Shown here: in pieces, positions 1,326 through 9,091 of the stretch | Layout of the letters: each line of letters opens with the position of its first letter | Position numbering within the stretch: position 1 is the stretch's first letter | Source: Basidiobolus meristosporus CBS 931.73 | Taxonomy: Eukaryota > Fungi > Basidiobolomycota | Reading direction: 5' to 3' | Length of the DNA: 64,000 nt | Assembly: GCA_002104905.1 (NCBI GenBank) | Contig: MCFE01000319.1 | Location: forward strand, 1 to 64,000 | Translations under genes and position numbers: made by a program | The notes under the pieces: generated by a model | The model's database searches: none | What the model saw: the letters and a program-made list of their open reading frames with translations, nothing else | Told to the model about the DNA's origin: nothing

Positions 1326-1332
1326 TATAAAA
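1326..1332 (+). promoter_or_regulatory. TATA box upstream of CHAP gene 1
   Basis: TATAAAA 67 nt upstream of the ATG at 1393. Confidence 0.45.
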
Positions 1333-1392: not shown

Positions 1393-2106
1393 ATGTTTAA
1401 AGCTCTTCTCTTCCTTTTTGCCTTGGCCTGCTGCCGAATCTCGGTCACGAGTGCGCGAATCAATTGTCCAGATGGCAATGGACTCTACTGTGGTAGTGTC
1501 CTGGGTCTTAAGCAGAACACTCTGTACGATTGCAAGTCGGATAGATGGAGCTGGAGTTATCACCCTGTTGAGCGCTGTGCCAACGGTTGTGTTGTTGCTA
1601 AAGCTGGCACCCCTGATTCCTGTGGTAAGGCGGAACCTCCCAAGGATGATAATGATGTTGGAAACCCTGGTGACAATGGCGATGACAACGGAAACGATAA
1701 TGGCAGCAACAACGATTACACTGACACCACCAATGTCGCCAACTATCCTTTGGAGTTCCGCTTTAGAAATGGCCAATGTACCGACTGGGCAGATGCGCGC
1801 TATGCGCAAATCACGGGCCATCATATCAGCTGGTGGGGTGATGCTCGCTTGTGGTCATCTCGTGCTCGCAGCGCTGGATGGTCAGTTTCGAAGACTCCTC
1901 GTGTTCCTTCGATCATTGTTATCCAGGCTGGCTACCAAGGAACCGGCGGGCCTGGCCATGTGGCCGTTGTGGAGAGAATCAACAACGATGGTAGTGTATA
2001 TACCAGCAACTACAACTATCGCTTCAACGGTAACGGTGGGCCTTACATCAAATCATACGGAACTTTCCGTACTGGCAATGGAGTTGACTTCATCTGGTAC
2101 AAATGA
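1393..2106 (+). CDS. Secreted CHAP-domain peptidoglycan hydrolase 1 (signal peptide + 6-Cys module + D/N-rich linker + CHAP), intronless, 237 aa
   Basis: The likely start is the ATG at 1393 (MFKALLFLFALACCRISVTSA signal peptide). CHAP motifs are present: NGQCTDWA (catalytic Cys, codon 1777-1779), WGDARLW, GW.VS.TP.V.SI.V and GHVAVVE.IN.DGS (catalytic His, codon 1957-1959). Confidence 0.9.
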   Translation: MFKALLFLFALACCRISVTSARINCPDGNGLYCGSVLGLKQNTLYDCKSDRWSWSYHPVERCANGCVVAKAGTPDSCGKAEPPKDDNDVGNPGDNGDDNGNDNGSNNDYTDTTNVANYPLEFRFRNGQCTDWADARYAQITGHHISWWGDARLWSSRARSAGWSVSKTPRVPSIIVIQAGYQGTGGPGHVAVVERINNDGSVYTSNYNYRFNGNGGPYIKSYGTFRTGNGVDFIWYK

Positions 2107-3177
2107 ATCTGATGTGAAATAATCAATGTGTATCATTTTCCGTATACTTTTGCAGCAATAGCTAGCTATGCTCCTGCTTCGTGTCCTAGATTGGATCCTA
2201 TAAAATGAATACTTTTGAAAAGTAACGTTATAGCTTTGTCAAACTTGGAAGCGATACAAGGATCGTTCAATTCAATTATGATTGCTGGGAGAAACCTTCA
2301 GTCTCCAATTGATCCCCACGAATCACTTCGACTGGACTGTTTCAGTAACTTGCCGCATTCTTCGAGTTGTCAAGGCGTATTGCCATATAAGGAACATACT
2401 CTTCCGGATTTATCGAATAGTGGGAATTTGTCACTTTACTTACCAGTCGTTTCCCATTGTCAGTCTCGTGAAGTAGCCTCGAGCAATCAGAGCTTAACGA
2501 TGCAACAAACCTCCGGTAGGTGAGGCCATGTGGCTTCATAAGGCTAGCAAATAATGGTTGTGTAGCGTATTCTTTATTTCCATGTAATCAGTGATCCACA
2601 TACAATAGTGGACTTTGTGAGTGTTGATGGCCCATTGGCTCACTGGGATGGCAATTAATGGTTGATTCAGAATTGCAGCATCGATCTAGCATCTAATTCA
2701 TCTTCTCAAGATGCTCCAACAGAAATTTCAAGGAGGTGATTGGCTCGCATTTATGTCGCCAAGCACGATGCAATGGATTCAAAATCGGCAACTCTAGGAT
2801 CGAGATCCCCCAGGGATTTCGGAGAATCGAATTCAGCATTGGCATCGTTAGCGTATCTGGACAACTTGAGTATATATGGATAATTCAAAGATGGGTGTGC
2901 ATCGAGAGTGTAATTGGATGACATTAAATGCCATTTCGCTGCGTGTTTTTCGTTTGGTCTAATCTTCTAGGCAATATCAGCAGTTAATGAAATTACCAGG
3001 ATTCCAACTCCATTTGACCAAGGGCTCTCTCCGGTGCTAAAGGGTTGACAATAGTTCGAAAACGTTGCTTAGGTTTGATTGCTAGAGTCCAGTGTACTAT
3101 TATCTTCTCTACAACCCGTAAACTATTGGTTTTGTTCGATATGCTCATTACAACACCGTCCTGCGTTATGTATGATC

Positions 3178-3185
3178 TATATAAA
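3178..3185 (+). promoter_or_regulatory. TATA box upstream of CHAP gene 2
   Basis: TATATAAA 60 nt upstream of the ATG at 3238, at a similar position to that of gene 1. Confidence 0.45.
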
Positions 3186-3237
3186 GACACGGTGAATATG
3201 CTAGCTCTCAGAAAACTCTCAGAAGCTCAGATTCGAA

Positions 3238-4004
3238 ATGGTGAACCTTCTTATCGTTTGCACAATGCTGGCACTTTTCGTCGGCGTGAATTCTCGAACA
3301 AATTGTCCTCACGGGAATGGGCTTTACTGTGGTTACGCAATTGGTAACTATAATTGTGCAATTTGTATGTGATGTAAATACCTAACTGATGCCTCTGACA
3401 TCTAGGCCAGGAGAAGGATATACTCTATAGGTGCTCTAGAAAAAAACCACTCAAGATGGTCAAGAGGTGCGAATATGGTTGCATTCAAAACAAACCGGGG
3501 TCACCTGATTACTGTAATAAGTCGGGAGATCAGGCAATTGGAGGGGATAATCAACGTAATCCCAAATGTTCTGGTGGAACTGATCCTAATACCAACGGTA
3601 CAGACACCTACACTTCCACCATAGGTGTAGCCAACTTTCCTTTGACATTCAGATTTCGCAATGGCCAATGCACTGACTGGGCCGATGCCCGTTATGCACA
3701 AATAACCGGTCACCATATATCATGGTACGGAGATGCCAGATTGTGGACTGCTCGTGCCCTGGCAAGTGGGCAATGGACTGTATCCAAGTCGCCCAAAGTT
3801 CCCTCAATCATCGTGCTGCAGCCTGGTGCTCAAGGTGCCGGAGGACCTGGCCACGTAGCTGTGGTTGAGACGATCAACGAAGATAAAAGCGTATATACAA
3901 GTAATTATAACTTTCGCTTTGGTGGAAAGGGTGGAGTTGGTATTTTATCCTATGGGGATTTCAGGCCAGGAGATGGCGTGGATTTTATCTGGCGCGACAA
4001 ATAA
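3238..4004 (+). CDS. Secreted CHAP-domain peptidoglycan hydrolase 2; join(3238..3343,3406..4004)
   Basis: Exon 1 encodes MVNLLIVCTMLALFVGVNS-RTNCPHGNGLYCGYAI. A 62-nt GT..CTAAC..TAG intron (3344-3405) joins it in frame to GQEKDILYRC...MVKRCEYGC and ORF 3456..4004. The CHAP domain is about three-quarters identical to gene 1, including an identical 26-aa stretch FRFRNGQCTDWADARYAQITGHHISW. Confidence 0.9.
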
Positions 4005-4138: not shown

Positions 4139-4483
4139 TCATTGAACAACGAAGCGGCGTTCTCTTAACAAGCCCCGGAGTTGATCAATTGCCTCTCTCG
4201 TAATCTTCCTTTCTATCTCAATCTGTCCGCGATGTTTATACGCTTCGATTCTGTGACGCATCAGGAGCATTCTTTCCGACTGGATATATTCACTCAGCGA
4301 GCGATTAAAATTTTCCTGAACTCCAATAGTAGAGTATGCGCTCAGATACGCTTTTTGCTTGAGCATCTCTTCAAAAGGCTCAAGAAGTTGGGAGCGTAAG
4401 CGCAGTAGCTCTTCGATGATTCCAGGTAATCCAAGAATCCCTGGCAGATGGAATGACAATATTAACAGAAATTTGAGTTTCAT
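4139..4483 (-). CDS. Small secreted helical protein, 114 aa, unknown function
   Basis: N-terminal signal peptide MKLKFLLILSFHLPGILG, then an E/K/R/L-rich amphipathic helical body. Aligns without gaps to the 5549..5986 protein. Confidence 0.65.
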   Translation of the reverse strand: MKLKFLLILSFHLPGILGLPGIIEELLRLRSQLLEPFEEMLKQKAYLSAYSTIGVQENFNRSLSEYIQSERMLLMRHRIEAYKHRGQIEIERKITREAIDQLRGLLRERRFVVQ

Positions 4484-7054: not shown

Positions 7055-9091
7055 CTAGTATTTAGAGATGCTACCATAAGAATCTGATGAACCACCGTCA
7101 CCTCCGGCACCACCTGCACCGCCGTCACCACCACCAGCACCGGAGCCTCCAGCGCCAGTACCGCTTCCATACCCGCCAGCGCCACCGTCACCACCACCAG
7201 AGCCACCTGCGCCACCGTCACCATTACCAGCACCAGAGCCACCTGCGCCAGCACCGCTTCCATATCCACCAGCACCAGCACCGGAGCCACCTGCGCCAGC
7301 GCCACCGTCACCACTACCAGCACCAGAGCCACCTGCACCAGCACCGGAGCCACCTGCGCCAGCACCGCTTCCATATCCACCAGCACCAGCACCGGAGCCA
7401 CCTGCGCCAGCGCCACCGTCACCACTACCAGCACCAGAGCCTCCAGCGCCAGCACCGCCACCATACCCACCACTACCTGCGCCAGCACCTCCATCACCTC
7501 CACCAGCGCCGGAGCCTCCAGTGCCAGCACCGCCACCATATCCACCACTACCTGCGCCAGCACCACCGGAGCCTCCAGTGCCAGCACCACCGCCATATCC
7601 ACCACCACCTGCGCCAGCACCACCGTCACCTCCACTAGCACCAGAGCCACCACCACCACCGGAGCCTCCAGTGCCAGCACCGCCACCATATCCACCACTA
7701 CCTGCGCCAGCACCACCGGAGCCTCCAGTGCCAGCACCGCCGCCATATCCACCACCACCTGCGCCAGCACTACCGTCACCACCACCACCGGAGCCTCCAG
7801 TGCCAGCACCGCCGCCATATCCACCACCACCTGCGCCAGCACCACCGTCACCTCCACTAGCGCCAGAGCCACCAGTACCACCGGAGCCTCCAGTGCCAGC
7901 ACCGCCACCATATCCACCACCACCTGCGCCAGCACCACCGTCACCTCCACCAGCGCCAGAGCCACCACCGGAGCCTCCAGTACCAGCACCGCCGCCATAT
8001 CCACCACTACCTGCGCCAGCACCACCGTCACCTCCACCAGCGCCAGAGCCACCACCGGAGCCTCCAGTACCAGCACCGCCGCCATATCCACCACTACCTG
8101 CGCCAGCACCACCGTCACCTCCACTAGCGCCAGAGCCACCAGCACCAGCACCACCGTAGCCTCCAGTGCCAGCACCGCCACCATATCCACCACTACCTGC
8201 GCCAGCACCACCGGAGCCTCCACCAGCGCCAGAGCCACCACCACCACCGGAGCCTCCAGTGCCAGCACCGCCACCATATCCACCACTACCTGCGCCACCA
8301 CCACCGTCACCACCATCACCACCATTGTTGTAAATGGAAATTCCAGGTCCAACAGCATTGTAACCTTCTTGTCTCGAGGTAATTCCTGGCCCGACTGCCT
8401 TGTAACCCTGAAGTCTTGAGGTGATTCCTGGCCCAACTGCCTTGTAACCCTGAAGTCTTGAGGTGATTCCTGGCCCGACTGCCTTATAGCCCTGGAGTCT
8501 TGAGGTAATACCTGGCCCGACTGCCTTGTAACCATTAAGTATCGAGGTAATTCCGGGGCCGACAGCCCTATAGCTGCCTCCTCCATGACCTCCCTTTCCG
8601 TGCTGAATCCATCCGAAAGATCCTAGTCCTCCCTTTCCTCCTTTACTGTGGTGGCCTTTACTTCCCTTCCCGTGGTGTCTGCCTCCTCTACCTCCTTTTC
8701 CGCGGTGTCCGCCTTTTCTACCTCCTTTTCCGTGGTGTCCGCCTTTTCTACCTCCTTTTCCGTGGTGTCCAACGCCTCCCTTACCACCTTTACCATGGTG
8801 TCCAGAACCACTACTTCCATGATGGCTTAGTCCCCCCTTACCATGGTGACCCGAACCTCCACCTCTTCTACCATGACTGCCTGAGCCTCTATGACCATAG
8901 CCTCCTGGACCCTTGGAATGATGTATAGGACGGATGCCACCTCCCCCATAACCCTTCCCTCCTCTAGAGCCTCCTCTGCTGGAAGAGTGGGACCTAGACA
9001 CACGAGATCTGCCTTTGCTACCATGCGGGATTGCTTCAGTGACTGTCGCCGCAAAAGTAATGGCAAGCAAAGCAAGAGCGGAAAGTCTCAT
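7055..9091 (-). CDS. Secreted glycine-rich repetitive structural/adhesive-like protein, 678 aa
   Basis: Signal peptide MRLSALALLAITFAATVTEA. Then a basic Gly/His/Lys/Arg block (GHHGKGGRKG repeats), six 14-aa GYKAVGPGITSRLQ-type units, and an approximately 420-aa Gly/Ala/Ser block with about 15 GGYG motifs. Single long ORF. Confidence 0.85.
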   Translation of the reverse strand: MRLSALALLAITFAATVTEAIPHGSKGRSRVSRSHSSSRGGSRGGKGYGGGGIRPIHHSKGPGGYGHRGSGSHGRRGGGSGHHGKGGLSHHGSSGSGHHGKGGKGGVGHHGKGGRKGGHHGKGGRKGGHRGKGGRGGRHHGKGSKGHHSKGGKGGLGSFGWIQHGKGGHGGGSYRAVGPGITSILNGYKAVGPGITSRLQGYKAVGPGITSRLQGYKAVGPGITSRLQGYKAVGPGITSRQEGYNAVGPGISIYNNGGDGGDGGGGAGSGGYGGGAGTGGSGGGGGSGAGGGSGGAGAGSGGYGGGAGTGGYGGAGAGGSGASGGDGGAGAGSGGYGGGAGTGGSGGGSGAGGGDGGAGAGSGGYGGGAGTGGSGGGSGAGGGDGGAGAGGGGYGGGAGTGGSGGTGGSGASGGDGGAGAGGGGYGGGAGTGGSGGGGDGSAGAGGGGYGGGAGTGGSGGAGAGSGGYGGGAGTGGSGGGGGSGASGGDGGAGAGGGGYGGGAGTGGSGGAGAGSGGYGGGAGTGGSGAGGGDGGAGAGSGGYGGGAGAGGSGAGSGDGGAGAGGSGAGAGGYGSGAGAGGSGAGAGGSGAGSGDGGAGAGGSGAGAGGYGSGAGAGGSGAGNGDGGAGGSGGGDGGAGGYGSGTGAGGSGAGGGDGGAGGAGGDGGSSDSYGSISKY
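7087..8323 (-). repeat. Coding low-complexity Gly/Ala/Ser/Tyr repeat array (GAGSGGYGGGAGTGGS-type units)
   Basis: CCA/GCA/GCC-rich quasi-periodic array on the + strand, encoding the C-terminal block of ORF 7055..9091. Confidence 0.9.
8324..8575 (-). repeat. Coding tandem repeat, 6 x 42 bp (GYKAVGPGITSRLQ consensus)
   Basis: Read directly: SYRAVGPGITSILN, 3x GYKAVGPGITSRLQ, GYKAVGPGITSRQE, GYNAVGPGISIYNN. Confidence 0.9.

Follow-up and report, generated by a model that had tools for sequence, protein, structure and literature searches.

Tandem CHAP-domain genes in the fungus Basidiobolus meristosporus: evidence for bacterial ancestry and a proposed antibacterial role

The CHAP Locus of Basidiobolus meristosporus

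Two genes encoding proteins of the CHAP type (MEROPS peptidase C51), a bacterial kind of enzyme whose usual task is to cut the walls of bacterial cells, lie in tandem, here designated gene A and gene B, on the + strand between positions 1393 and 4004 of the window, that is, the whole 64,000-nucleotide (nt) stretch analyzed, which comprises positions 1 to 64,000 of contig MCFE01000319.1 of Basidiobolus meristosporus CBS 931.73 (assembly GCA_002104905.1). The pair had been proposed at these coordinates in an initial annotation made from the DNA letters alone, and both its position and its identity are confirmed, with matches to the Pfam CHAP model (PF05257) of 61.4 bits for gene A (expectation value, E, 1.2e-16) and 54.2 bits for gene B, against a gathering threshold of 26. 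From the analyses described below, we consider it likely that A and B are old tandem paralogs within a Basidiobolus-specific family of secreted CHAP proteins, a family that was acquired once from bacteria, expanded, gained an additional module by fusion, and came to be used against bacteria.

The open reading frame (ORF) of gene A is unbroken from its ATG at 1393 to the stop codon at 2104-2106, and its product is identical to database record P0001. Gene B ends with a stop codon at 4002-4004, as initially annotated, and contains a 62-nt intron that had gone unstated; its spliced product of 234 amino acids (aa) aligns over its whole length with protein P0004 of Basidiobolus ranarum. Over 198 aa the A and B proteins share 59% identity (E 2e-71), and they have a common four-part layout in which an N-terminal stretch resembling a signal peptide (about 20 aa) is followed by a six-cysteine module (about 57 aa), a linker whose sequence and length differ between the paralogs, and the CHAP domain. 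Public databases already list proteins of this type under the name "Peptidase C51 domain-containing protein." The signal peptides claimed at the outset are plausible for both genes (MFKALLFLFALACCRISVTSA before R in gene A, MVNLLIVCTMLALFVGVNS before R in gene B), a judgment made by inspection only; in an AlphaFold2 (AF2) model of the gene A protein, the predicted local distance difference test score (pLDDT) is about 50 across this region. Upstream of each gene is a TATA box, and the B. ranarum ortholog of gene A carries TATAAAA at a similar upstream distance. A six-frame scan with hidden Markov models (HMMs) of the module and the CHAP domain found no further copies of either within the 64-kb window. 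The features of the locus are as follows.

1326..1332, + strand: TATAAAA box, about 60 nt upstream of the gene A ATG, by inspection
1393..2106, + strand: gene A, coding sequence without intron, 237 aa (predicted signal peptide, Cys-rich module, linker, CHAP domain), from the ORF and Pfam
1393..1455, + strand: predicted signal peptide of gene A, aa 1-21, by inspection (Lys3, a hydrophobic core, and T-S-A preceding Arg22)
1456..1632, + strand: six-cysteine module of gene A, aa 22-80, motif CPxGNGLYCG..LYxC..CxNGC..GxxDxC, homologous to bacterial tandem repeats
1633..1734, + strand: linker of gene A, aa 81-114, Asn/Asp/Gly-rich and disordered (pLDDT below 50 over aa 90-109)
1735..2103, + strand: CHAP domain of gene A, aa 115-237 (Cys129 at 1777-1779, His189 at 1957-1959, Asn206 at 2008-2010, Asn208 at 2014-2016)
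3178..3186, + strand: TATATAAAG box, a TATA box about 55 nt upstream of the gene B ATG, by inspection
3238..3343, + strand: gene B exon 1, with ATG at 3238, predicted signal peptide (aa 1-19) and start of the module
3344..3405, + strand: gene B intron, 62 nt, phase 1, GTAACT...CTAAC...TAG, within the module
3406..4004, + strand: gene B exon 2, with the remainder of the module (to about 3530), the linker and the CHAP domain at 3627-4001 (Cys124 at 3669-3671, His185 at 3852-3854)

The Catalytic Domain

Both proteins retain the catalytic cysteine within GQCT (Cys129 in A, Cys124 in B) and the catalytic histidine within GHVAV (His189 in A, His185 in B) that the initial annotation had recognized. 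These residues occupy invariant columns in an alignment of fungal and bacterial members of the family, and align to the corresponding residues of the solved structures 2k3a and 5t1q. A third polar residue lies 17 positions after the histidine (Asn206 in A, Asn202 in B); throughout the family this position holds Asn or Asp, and it aligns to a Glu in the CHAP domain of Staphylococcus saprophyticus (2k3a), while a second Asn two residues further on (Asn208 in A) is invariant. The CHAPK domain of LysK also has Glu at the equivalent position.

The structural data are consistent with this assignment and place the domain in the papain-like alpha+beta fold. The AF2 model has a mean pLDDT of 81.5, with values of about 90 or more in both folded parts and above 90 in the CHAP domain, where a helix begins at residue 129 and a strand spans residues 189-196. 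When compared against the PDB with Foldseek, the model returned 12 matches with E below 1e-3, all of them CHAP domains, including the Staphylococcus aureus amidase SAOUHSC_02979 (5t1q), the hub CHAP domain of phage phi812 (9eum), the tail tip of phage Andhra (8ej5), 2lrj, 2k3a, PcsB (4cgk) and PlyPy, with LysK CHAPK (4csh) following at E 2.8e-3. Solved CHAP domains are also matched by sequence at E 5e-13 to 2e-10, and a structure search of the Atlas gave template modeling (TM) scores of 0.82-0.88 to CHAP clusters. The staphylococcal and phage hydrolases, as the best matches among solved structures, thus share the fold and the catalytic Cys and His with A and B, but their identity is 18-35% in the Foldseek alignments and their partner domains differ.

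Genes A and B Are Fungal Genes

Several lines of evidence identify A and B as real fungal genes. Firstly, the contig, on which the initial annotation had noted spliced housekeeping genes, is eukaryotic: the same window contains RGS, DEAD-box helicase, EXS and C2H2 zinc-finger ORFs. Secondly, in the genomic sequencing runs X1 and X2 a single contig covers both genes and their flanks at a flat depth of about 107, without differences. Thirdly, in an independent assembly of B. ranarum (GCA_040143965.1) the order of gene A, gene B, a 114-aa gene on the opposite strand and the next gene is kept, although the region is split over two contigs.

The intron provides further insight into the history of the pair. 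Gene B, its B. ranarum ortholog (67-nt intron) and the B. ranarum ortholog of gene A (73-nt phase-1 intron, contig L068, 2572-2644) are interrupted at the same codon and phase, namely at the first base of the Gly codon between the ...LG and ...LYxC motifs, while gene A of the window has no intron at this site (1504-1506). This shared position indicates that the intron is older than the A/B duplication and was precisely lost from gene A in this genome. The proportion of synonymous differences (pS) is saturated at 0.67-0.77, against a proportion of nonsynonymous differences (pN) of 0.17-0.28, which shows the genes to be old and under purifying selection; in the sole pair for which a synonymous rate could be computed, dN/dS is about 0.11. 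The guanine-plus-cytosine (GC) content of A (0.51) and B (0.47) is typical of the coding DNA of this genome, whereas CHAP segments of Ktedonobacteria average 0.55. Taken together, these data place the A/B duplication before the split from B. ranarum, as one step in the expansion of the family to more than 30 sequence clusters.

An additional small run, X3, from the same study as the genome runs and of unrecorded kind, yielded a 702-nt contig over gene A (1382-2083) and another over the 3' part of gene B, leaving the gene B intron uncovered. X3 also has isolated contigs with a depth of about 20 in the DNA that separates the two CHAP genes, at 2555-2749 and 2868-3084, an interval that contains only short minus-strand ORFs and has no blastn match in B. 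ranarum; they may represent an unannotated transcript, or be meaningless. Because X3 contigs cover intergenic DNA as well, those over genes A and B are only a hint of transcription and are not counted as proof of it.

Distribution and Ancestry of the CHAP Domain

A word-based search of 5.8 billion clustered proteins returned 117 matches, among which the named eukaryotic ones all belong to B. meristosporus CBS 931.73 or B. ranarum and none comes from any other eukaryote. This is the patchy fungal distribution that the initial annotation had expected under horizontal gene transfer (HGT). Within Basidiobolus the family is large: at 90% identity it falls into more than 30 clusters, whose members are spread over many contigs. 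Next in rank come CHAP proteins of 310-360 aa from Ktedonobacteraceae or Thermogemmatispora, with 57-61% identity over the domain. The outcome was similar when 1.84 billion representatives were scanned exhaustively with HMMER: most rows are unnamed, and the named rows among the best 150 are all Basidiobolus or bacterial. When one genome per species was scanned (185,579 bacterial and archaeal species genomes), all 61 confirmed loci were in Ktedonobacteria (Ktedonobacter, Thermogemmatispora, Dictyobacter, Tengunoibacter, Ktedonosporobacter and metagenome-assembled genomes, MAGs), a result that is not independent of the preceding ones in that the search patterns were built from an alignment already holding Ktedonobacteria sequences. 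Independently of these scans, a Chloroflexota cluster comes out on top in the Atlas structure search (TM 0.88). By comparison, CHAP domains of Firmicutes, phages and plasmids reach at most 42% identity by tblastn.

The Ktedonobacteria proteins, which are annotated as "CHAP domain-containing protein" or "surface antigen" and are about 310-360 aa long, have in common with the fungal proteins the motifs GQCT.WA..RY, VPSIIVLQPG.QG, GHVAVVERIN.DGSVYTSNYN and GVSF(I/V)W, as well as the positions of the Cys, His and both Asn residues. The initial annotation had guessed at a Chloroflexi-like donor from a TSNYNW-type motif, and every named close relative has indeed proved to be a Ktedonobacterium with that same motif. 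Differences are equally apparent. By inspection, the C-terminal CHAP domain of the bacterial proteins is preceded by a long N-terminal stretch rich in Pro and Gln and by a single transmembrane helix, where the fungal proteins have a signal peptide. The bacterial proteins also lack both the Cys-rich module and introns and are encoded by DNA of higher GC content. Some Basidiobolus paralogs carry low-complexity linkers in place of the module after the signal peptide, and across the expanded family the low-complexity N-termini are divergent.

Phylogenetic trees were computed from 121 alignment columns and included 39 Basidiobolus domains. The Basidiobolus domains form one clade, with a Shimodaira-Hasegawa-like approximate likelihood ratio test (SH-aLRT) value of 100 in a quick tree of 239 rows and support of 100/97 in a careful tree of 139 rows, which fits a single acquisition followed by expansion. 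In the free maximum likelihood (ML) tree, which has four Firmicute, phage and plasmid CHAPs as the outgroup, this clade is nested eight levels deep within Ktedonobacteria, and its sister (100/92) is P0109, a protein of a Ktedonobacteraceae MAG with the typical cellular, bacterial architecture. Given that the family is broad in bacteria and confined to a single genus among fungi, the direction of transfer would be from bacterium to fungus. The proposal of HGT followed by duplication, made at the outset, is therefore supported: the nearest non-fungal relatives are all bacterial, and the genes are integrated, intron-bearing and under purifying selection. The data likewise support a putative donor belonging or close to the Ktedonobacteria (Chloroflexota).

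The tree also contains a basal subclade of proteins with an N-terminal CHAP domain that are encoded on phage-like contigs. One of these, L066 (Logan contig ERR7626357_26779, about 17 kb), carries its CHAP gene at 8001-8873 together with small co-oriented genes, a DNA_pol_B_2 gene (a protein-primed type-B polymerase) and a gene for a Pel9A-like beta-helix protein. The contig possibly derives from a phage of Ktedonobacteria, and a phage vector for the transfer of the CHAP gene is conceivable.

The N-Terminal Six-Cysteine Module

In an exhaustive search, residues 22-80 or so of the gene A protein match tandem repeats in large bacterial proteins, with up to 15 copies in a single protein (P0118). 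The repeat is about 55 aa long, and an alignment of 55 copies shows no variation at six Cys, three Gly and one Asp. The AF2 model predicts with confidence that the module folds as an independent disulfide-rich domain (pLDDT about 90), with three predicted disulfides and a core formed by a beta-hairpin. Neither Pfam-A nor NCBIfam holds a model for it, and a Foldseek search of the PDB with the module gave nothing significant, the best matches (E about 2) being weak resemblances to small beta modules of the CBM14 and CBM48 types.

The bacterial proteins that carry the module suggest what it may do. Among 20 such proteins scanned, the partner domains were Peptidase_M23 (five proteins), Amidase_2 (four), SpoIID (two), and GH25 lysozyme, SLT and CHAP (one each). 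The peptidoglycan-hydrolase catalytic domains that occur with the module are thus of at least six kinds, and from this association a role in cell-wall targeting appears most likely. In P0118 and P0177, which have 5-15 repeat copies, the C-terminal segment of about 130 aa contains a Cys...GH(I/V)V(I)...G motif that looks NlpC/P60- or CHAP-like by eye and has no Pfam or NCBIfam match. One carrier is from a Myxococcales MAG (P0119), and the Atlas structure matches of the module are M23 peptidases of Myxococcota (TM 0.74). The AlphaFold-DB clusters include two "Peptidase C51 domain-containing" proteins bearing the module (A9GVR1 and A0A150R4J6) and, in addition, small fungal secreted proteins of 35-36% identity; module-like folds occur as well in a protein with a KP4 killer-toxin domain. 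Word-based searches returned no match other than itself for the gene A module alone and, for a module profile, eight small unnamed proteins lacking usable taxonomy; they gave no confirmation of the small look-alikes in Ascomycota to which the structure matches had pointed.

Compared with the repeats of these Myxococcota-type lytic enzymes, the gene A module is 40-51% identical and shares the six invariant cysteines. The enzymes themselves combine the repeat with Peptidase_M23 (P0119), with Amidase_2 and SpoIID (P0123), with M23 and GH25 (P0145), or with a CHAP domain that is only distantly related to the fungal one, at about 40% (P0193). They differ from the fungal proteins in bearing arrays of 3-15 repeats, usually at the C-terminus, where A and B have one N-terminal copy, and the type-A module has a four-residue insertion, WSWS, relative to the bacterial repeats.

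Within Basidiobolus, the module is confined to a five-member CHAP subclade (A, B, P0002, P0003 and P0004; 100/98) and a truncated gene model, P0129, and no copy was found by HMM in the 61 Ktedonobacteria loci, which were scanned together with as much as 4 kb of sequence to either side. The subclade is derived rather than basal in the CHAP tree, which suggests that a CHAP gene already resident in the fungus probably gained the module by fusion once diversification of the family was under way; the module would have come from either a second bacterial transfer or a fungal gene. The layout of binding module plus catalytic domain put forward in the initial annotation is supported by association, in that the bacterial repeat stands beside peptidoglycan-hydrolase domains, with the amendment that the module and the CHAP domain have different nearest relatives and that the former was probably added after transfer of the latter. 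A more specific proposal is that A and B are chimeras built in the fungus from a Ktedonobacteria-type CHAP domain and a Myxococcota-type targeting repeat, the latter representing an undescribed family of disulfide-rich, cell-wall-binding domains of about 55 aa; this we regard as possible rather than probable.

Proposed Function and Alternative Explanations

On balance, we favor a function for A and B as secreted peptidoglycan amidases or endopeptidases that would act on the walls of other organisms, in competition or for feeding. This proposal draws on the intact catalytic residues and purifying selection, on relatives that are exclusively cell-wall hydrolases, on the signal peptide, on a module that travels with lytic enzymes, and on the strong expansion of the family and the bacteria-rich habitats of Basidiobolus. 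What the data show directly is the sequence and domains of the two proteins, their fold and catalytic residues, the integration and conservation of the genes, and the distribution and nearest relatives of the family; secretion, the binding role of the module, the substrate and the biological role are all matters that we infer. Under the proposed scenario, the CHAP domain would have entered the Basidiobolus ancestor once, from a bacterium belonging to or near the Ktedonobacteria, where its bacterial membrane anchor would have been exchanged for a cleavable signal peptide and the gene would have gained fungal promoter elements and an intron. The family would then have grown to the more than 30 sequence clusters seen across the two named Basidiobolus genomes, and in the A/B subclade a single disulfide-rich module of about 55 aa would have been inserted between the signal peptide and the CHAP domain. 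The secreted proteins may dock on the bacterial envelope or peptidoglycan by means of the module, allowing the Cys129-His189-Asn206 center to cut an amide bond of the stem peptide or cross-bridge. Neighboring bacteria would be lysed or weakened as a result, to the benefit of the fungus in competition or feeding in soil, dung, or the amphibian or reptile gut.

Several observations weigh against parts of this explanation. With respect to origin, the approximately unbiased (AU) test does not reject a topology in which Basidiobolus and the outgroup are placed together, and Basidiobolus is consequently sister to all Ktedonobacteria (p 0.55), and the tree constrained in this way is 6 log-likelihood (lnL) units better than the tree from the free search. 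With so few columns and two long branches, the alignment does not discriminate between a nested and a sister position; the nesting of the fungal CHAP domains inside a bacterial clade, which the initial annotation had anticipated under HGT, is therefore seen in the free ML tree but is not established in the strict sense. In both topologies Basidiobolus groups with Ktedonobacteria-type CHAPs, apart from the four outgroup sequences. With respect to function, the third catalytic position is Asn or Asp, as opposed to Glu in the characterized staphylococcal enzymes, CHAP domains also act on amides other than those of peptidoglycan, such as glutathionylspermidine, and the module has no solved or characterized relative, its binding role being drawn only from domain association.

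One alternative concerns the identity of the donor. The origin could be bacterial as proposed and yet lie outside the sampled Ktedonobacteria, in a phage of such bacteria or in an unsampled sister lineage, as the AU test and the better likelihood of the constrained tree would allow and as the basal clade of N-terminal CHAP proteins on phage-like contigs such as L066 might suggest. Against this stand the sister relationship in the free tree (100/92) to P0109, a protein of cellular architecture, and an identity to cellular Ktedonobacteria proteins (55-62%) that exceeds that to the phage-like group (44-49%). We therefore judge a donor of this other kind to be unlikely.

The main rival to the proposed function is a shift of substrate. 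In this scenario, A and B would be re-purposed secreted CHAP amidases acting on a fungal wall glycoprotein, a peptide metabolite or a host molecule, or would be non-lytic proteins that bind or modulate immunity. The CHAP superfamily does include amidases that do not act on peptidoglycan, and in fold the model weakly resembles glutathionylspermidine amidase and trypanothione synthetase-amidase; moreover, the large expansion with divergent low-complexity N-termini could reflect diversified targets, and the module-like folds of small fungal secreted proteins and of the KP4 killer-toxin-domain protein point in the same direction. These considerations are countered by the close relatives in sequence and fold, all of which are cell-wall hydrolases, by the invariance of the catalytic residues, and by the module, whose only catalytic partners in the bacterial proteins examined are domains of peptidoglycan hydrolases. 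Re-purposing is accordingly improbable in our estimation, somewhat more so than a donor outside the sampled Ktedonobacteria.

Vertical descent of an ancient eukaryotic gene lost nearly everywhere else would be in keeping with the fully fungal codon composition (GC 0.47-0.51 versus 0.55) and the introns, in that the DNA itself does not look foreign. This very remote alternative is rejected on the narrow eukaryotic distribution, with no other eukaryote in the 117 word-search matches or the named rows of the best 150 exhaustive matches, on the 55-62% identity to one bacterial class, and on the very many independent losses that it would require. Bacterial contamination or mis-assembly, for which only the bacterial affinity of the domains could speak, is refuted to the point of near impossibility by the position-conserved spliceosomal intron, the TATA boxes, the eukaryotic flanking genes, a depth equal to that of the flanks on a single contig, and synteny in the independently assembled sister species.

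Comparison with Known Systems

The best functional analog of A and B is CwhA of Aspergillus fumigatus, a secreted protein with a signal peptide, an SH3b domain and an NlpC/P60 domain that has been shown to cleave the stem peptide of peptidoglycan and to lyse Gram-positive bacteria (PMC12332128). Like A and B, CwhA joins a binding module to a papain-like Cys/His cell-wall peptidase of bacterial type in a secreted fungal protein; it differs in that its catalytic domain is NlpC/P60 (PF00877) rather than CHAP (PF05257) and its binding module is SH3b (PMC12332128). The CwhA study treats this one protein, and the word "horizontal" is absent from it (PMC12332128). With regard to CHAP domains in particular, the oomycete Saprolegnia parasitica possesses seven CHAP genes whose products are predicted to be secreted and for which bacterial acquisition followed by repeated duplication has been proposed (PMC3681718). 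Here too, CHAP genes of presumed bacterial origin were duplicated after transfer into an osmotrophic eukaryote, but the organism is not a fungus and the donor was not identified (PMC3681718). The likeness is drawn at the level of the CHAP domain. No Saprolegnia protein is present among the source-named matches of our searches, most matches of the exhaustive search being unnamed.

Bacterial HGT is extensive in Basidiobolus, accounting for about 5% of genes, and is unusually frequent in this genus, though CHAP is not named in the text of that report (PMC7466969). Two large surveys of fungal HGT make no mention of CHAP or peptidoglycan (PMC11291939; PMC11708051), and in the library that we searched no paper joins Basidiobolus with the CHAP domain or with Ktedonobacteria.

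Other Features of the Window

The ORF that directly follows gene B lies on the minus strand at 4139-4483; it encodes 114 aa and begins with a sequence resembling a signal peptide. Its position is kept in B. ranarum (contig L067, 2599-2943), with about 70% identity at the DNA level, and no Pfam match is on record for the B. ranarum gene. Farther along, a 678-aa ORF on the minus strand (7058-9091) begins with a signal-peptide-like sequence and continues with HHGKGG repeats, five copies of YKAVGPGITSRLQG, and about 400 aa of glycine-rich repeats of the GGYGGGAGTGGSGG type. Its DNA has a GC content of 61-68% and a GC skew down to -0.49, and it has no Pfam match; the product looks like a secreted glycine-rich structural protein.

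Significance

Bacterial cell-wall hydrolases, among them GH25 lysozymes and Tae/Dae amidases, have been transferred to eukaryotes as antibacterial tools, and such transfer is a recognized route by which new tools of this kind arise. The Basidiobolus genes extend this record to a CHAP family in a fungus, one for which a donor lineage, the filamentous Ktedonobacteria of soil, can be identified. Additional interest attaches to that lineage, to the size of the expansion, and to the unannotated module. As small, secreted, single-chain CHAP enzymes that are naturally expressed by a eukaryote, proteins such as A and B would be, as predicted from their sequences, practical enzybiotic candidates. For the biology of the genus, the expansion is very large and has occurred in fungi that live amid dense bacteria in soil, dung, and the guts of amphibians and reptiles. 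The unannotated disulfide-rich repeat, for its part, is a marker of lytic enzymes in Myxococcota-like bacteria, and it may represent a new module for targeting the cell wall. If the chimeric origin of A and B is true, Basidiobolus would have re-created, by shuffling foreign domains, an endolysin-like architecture that is also seen in the bacterial proteins that combine the module with Peptidase C51.

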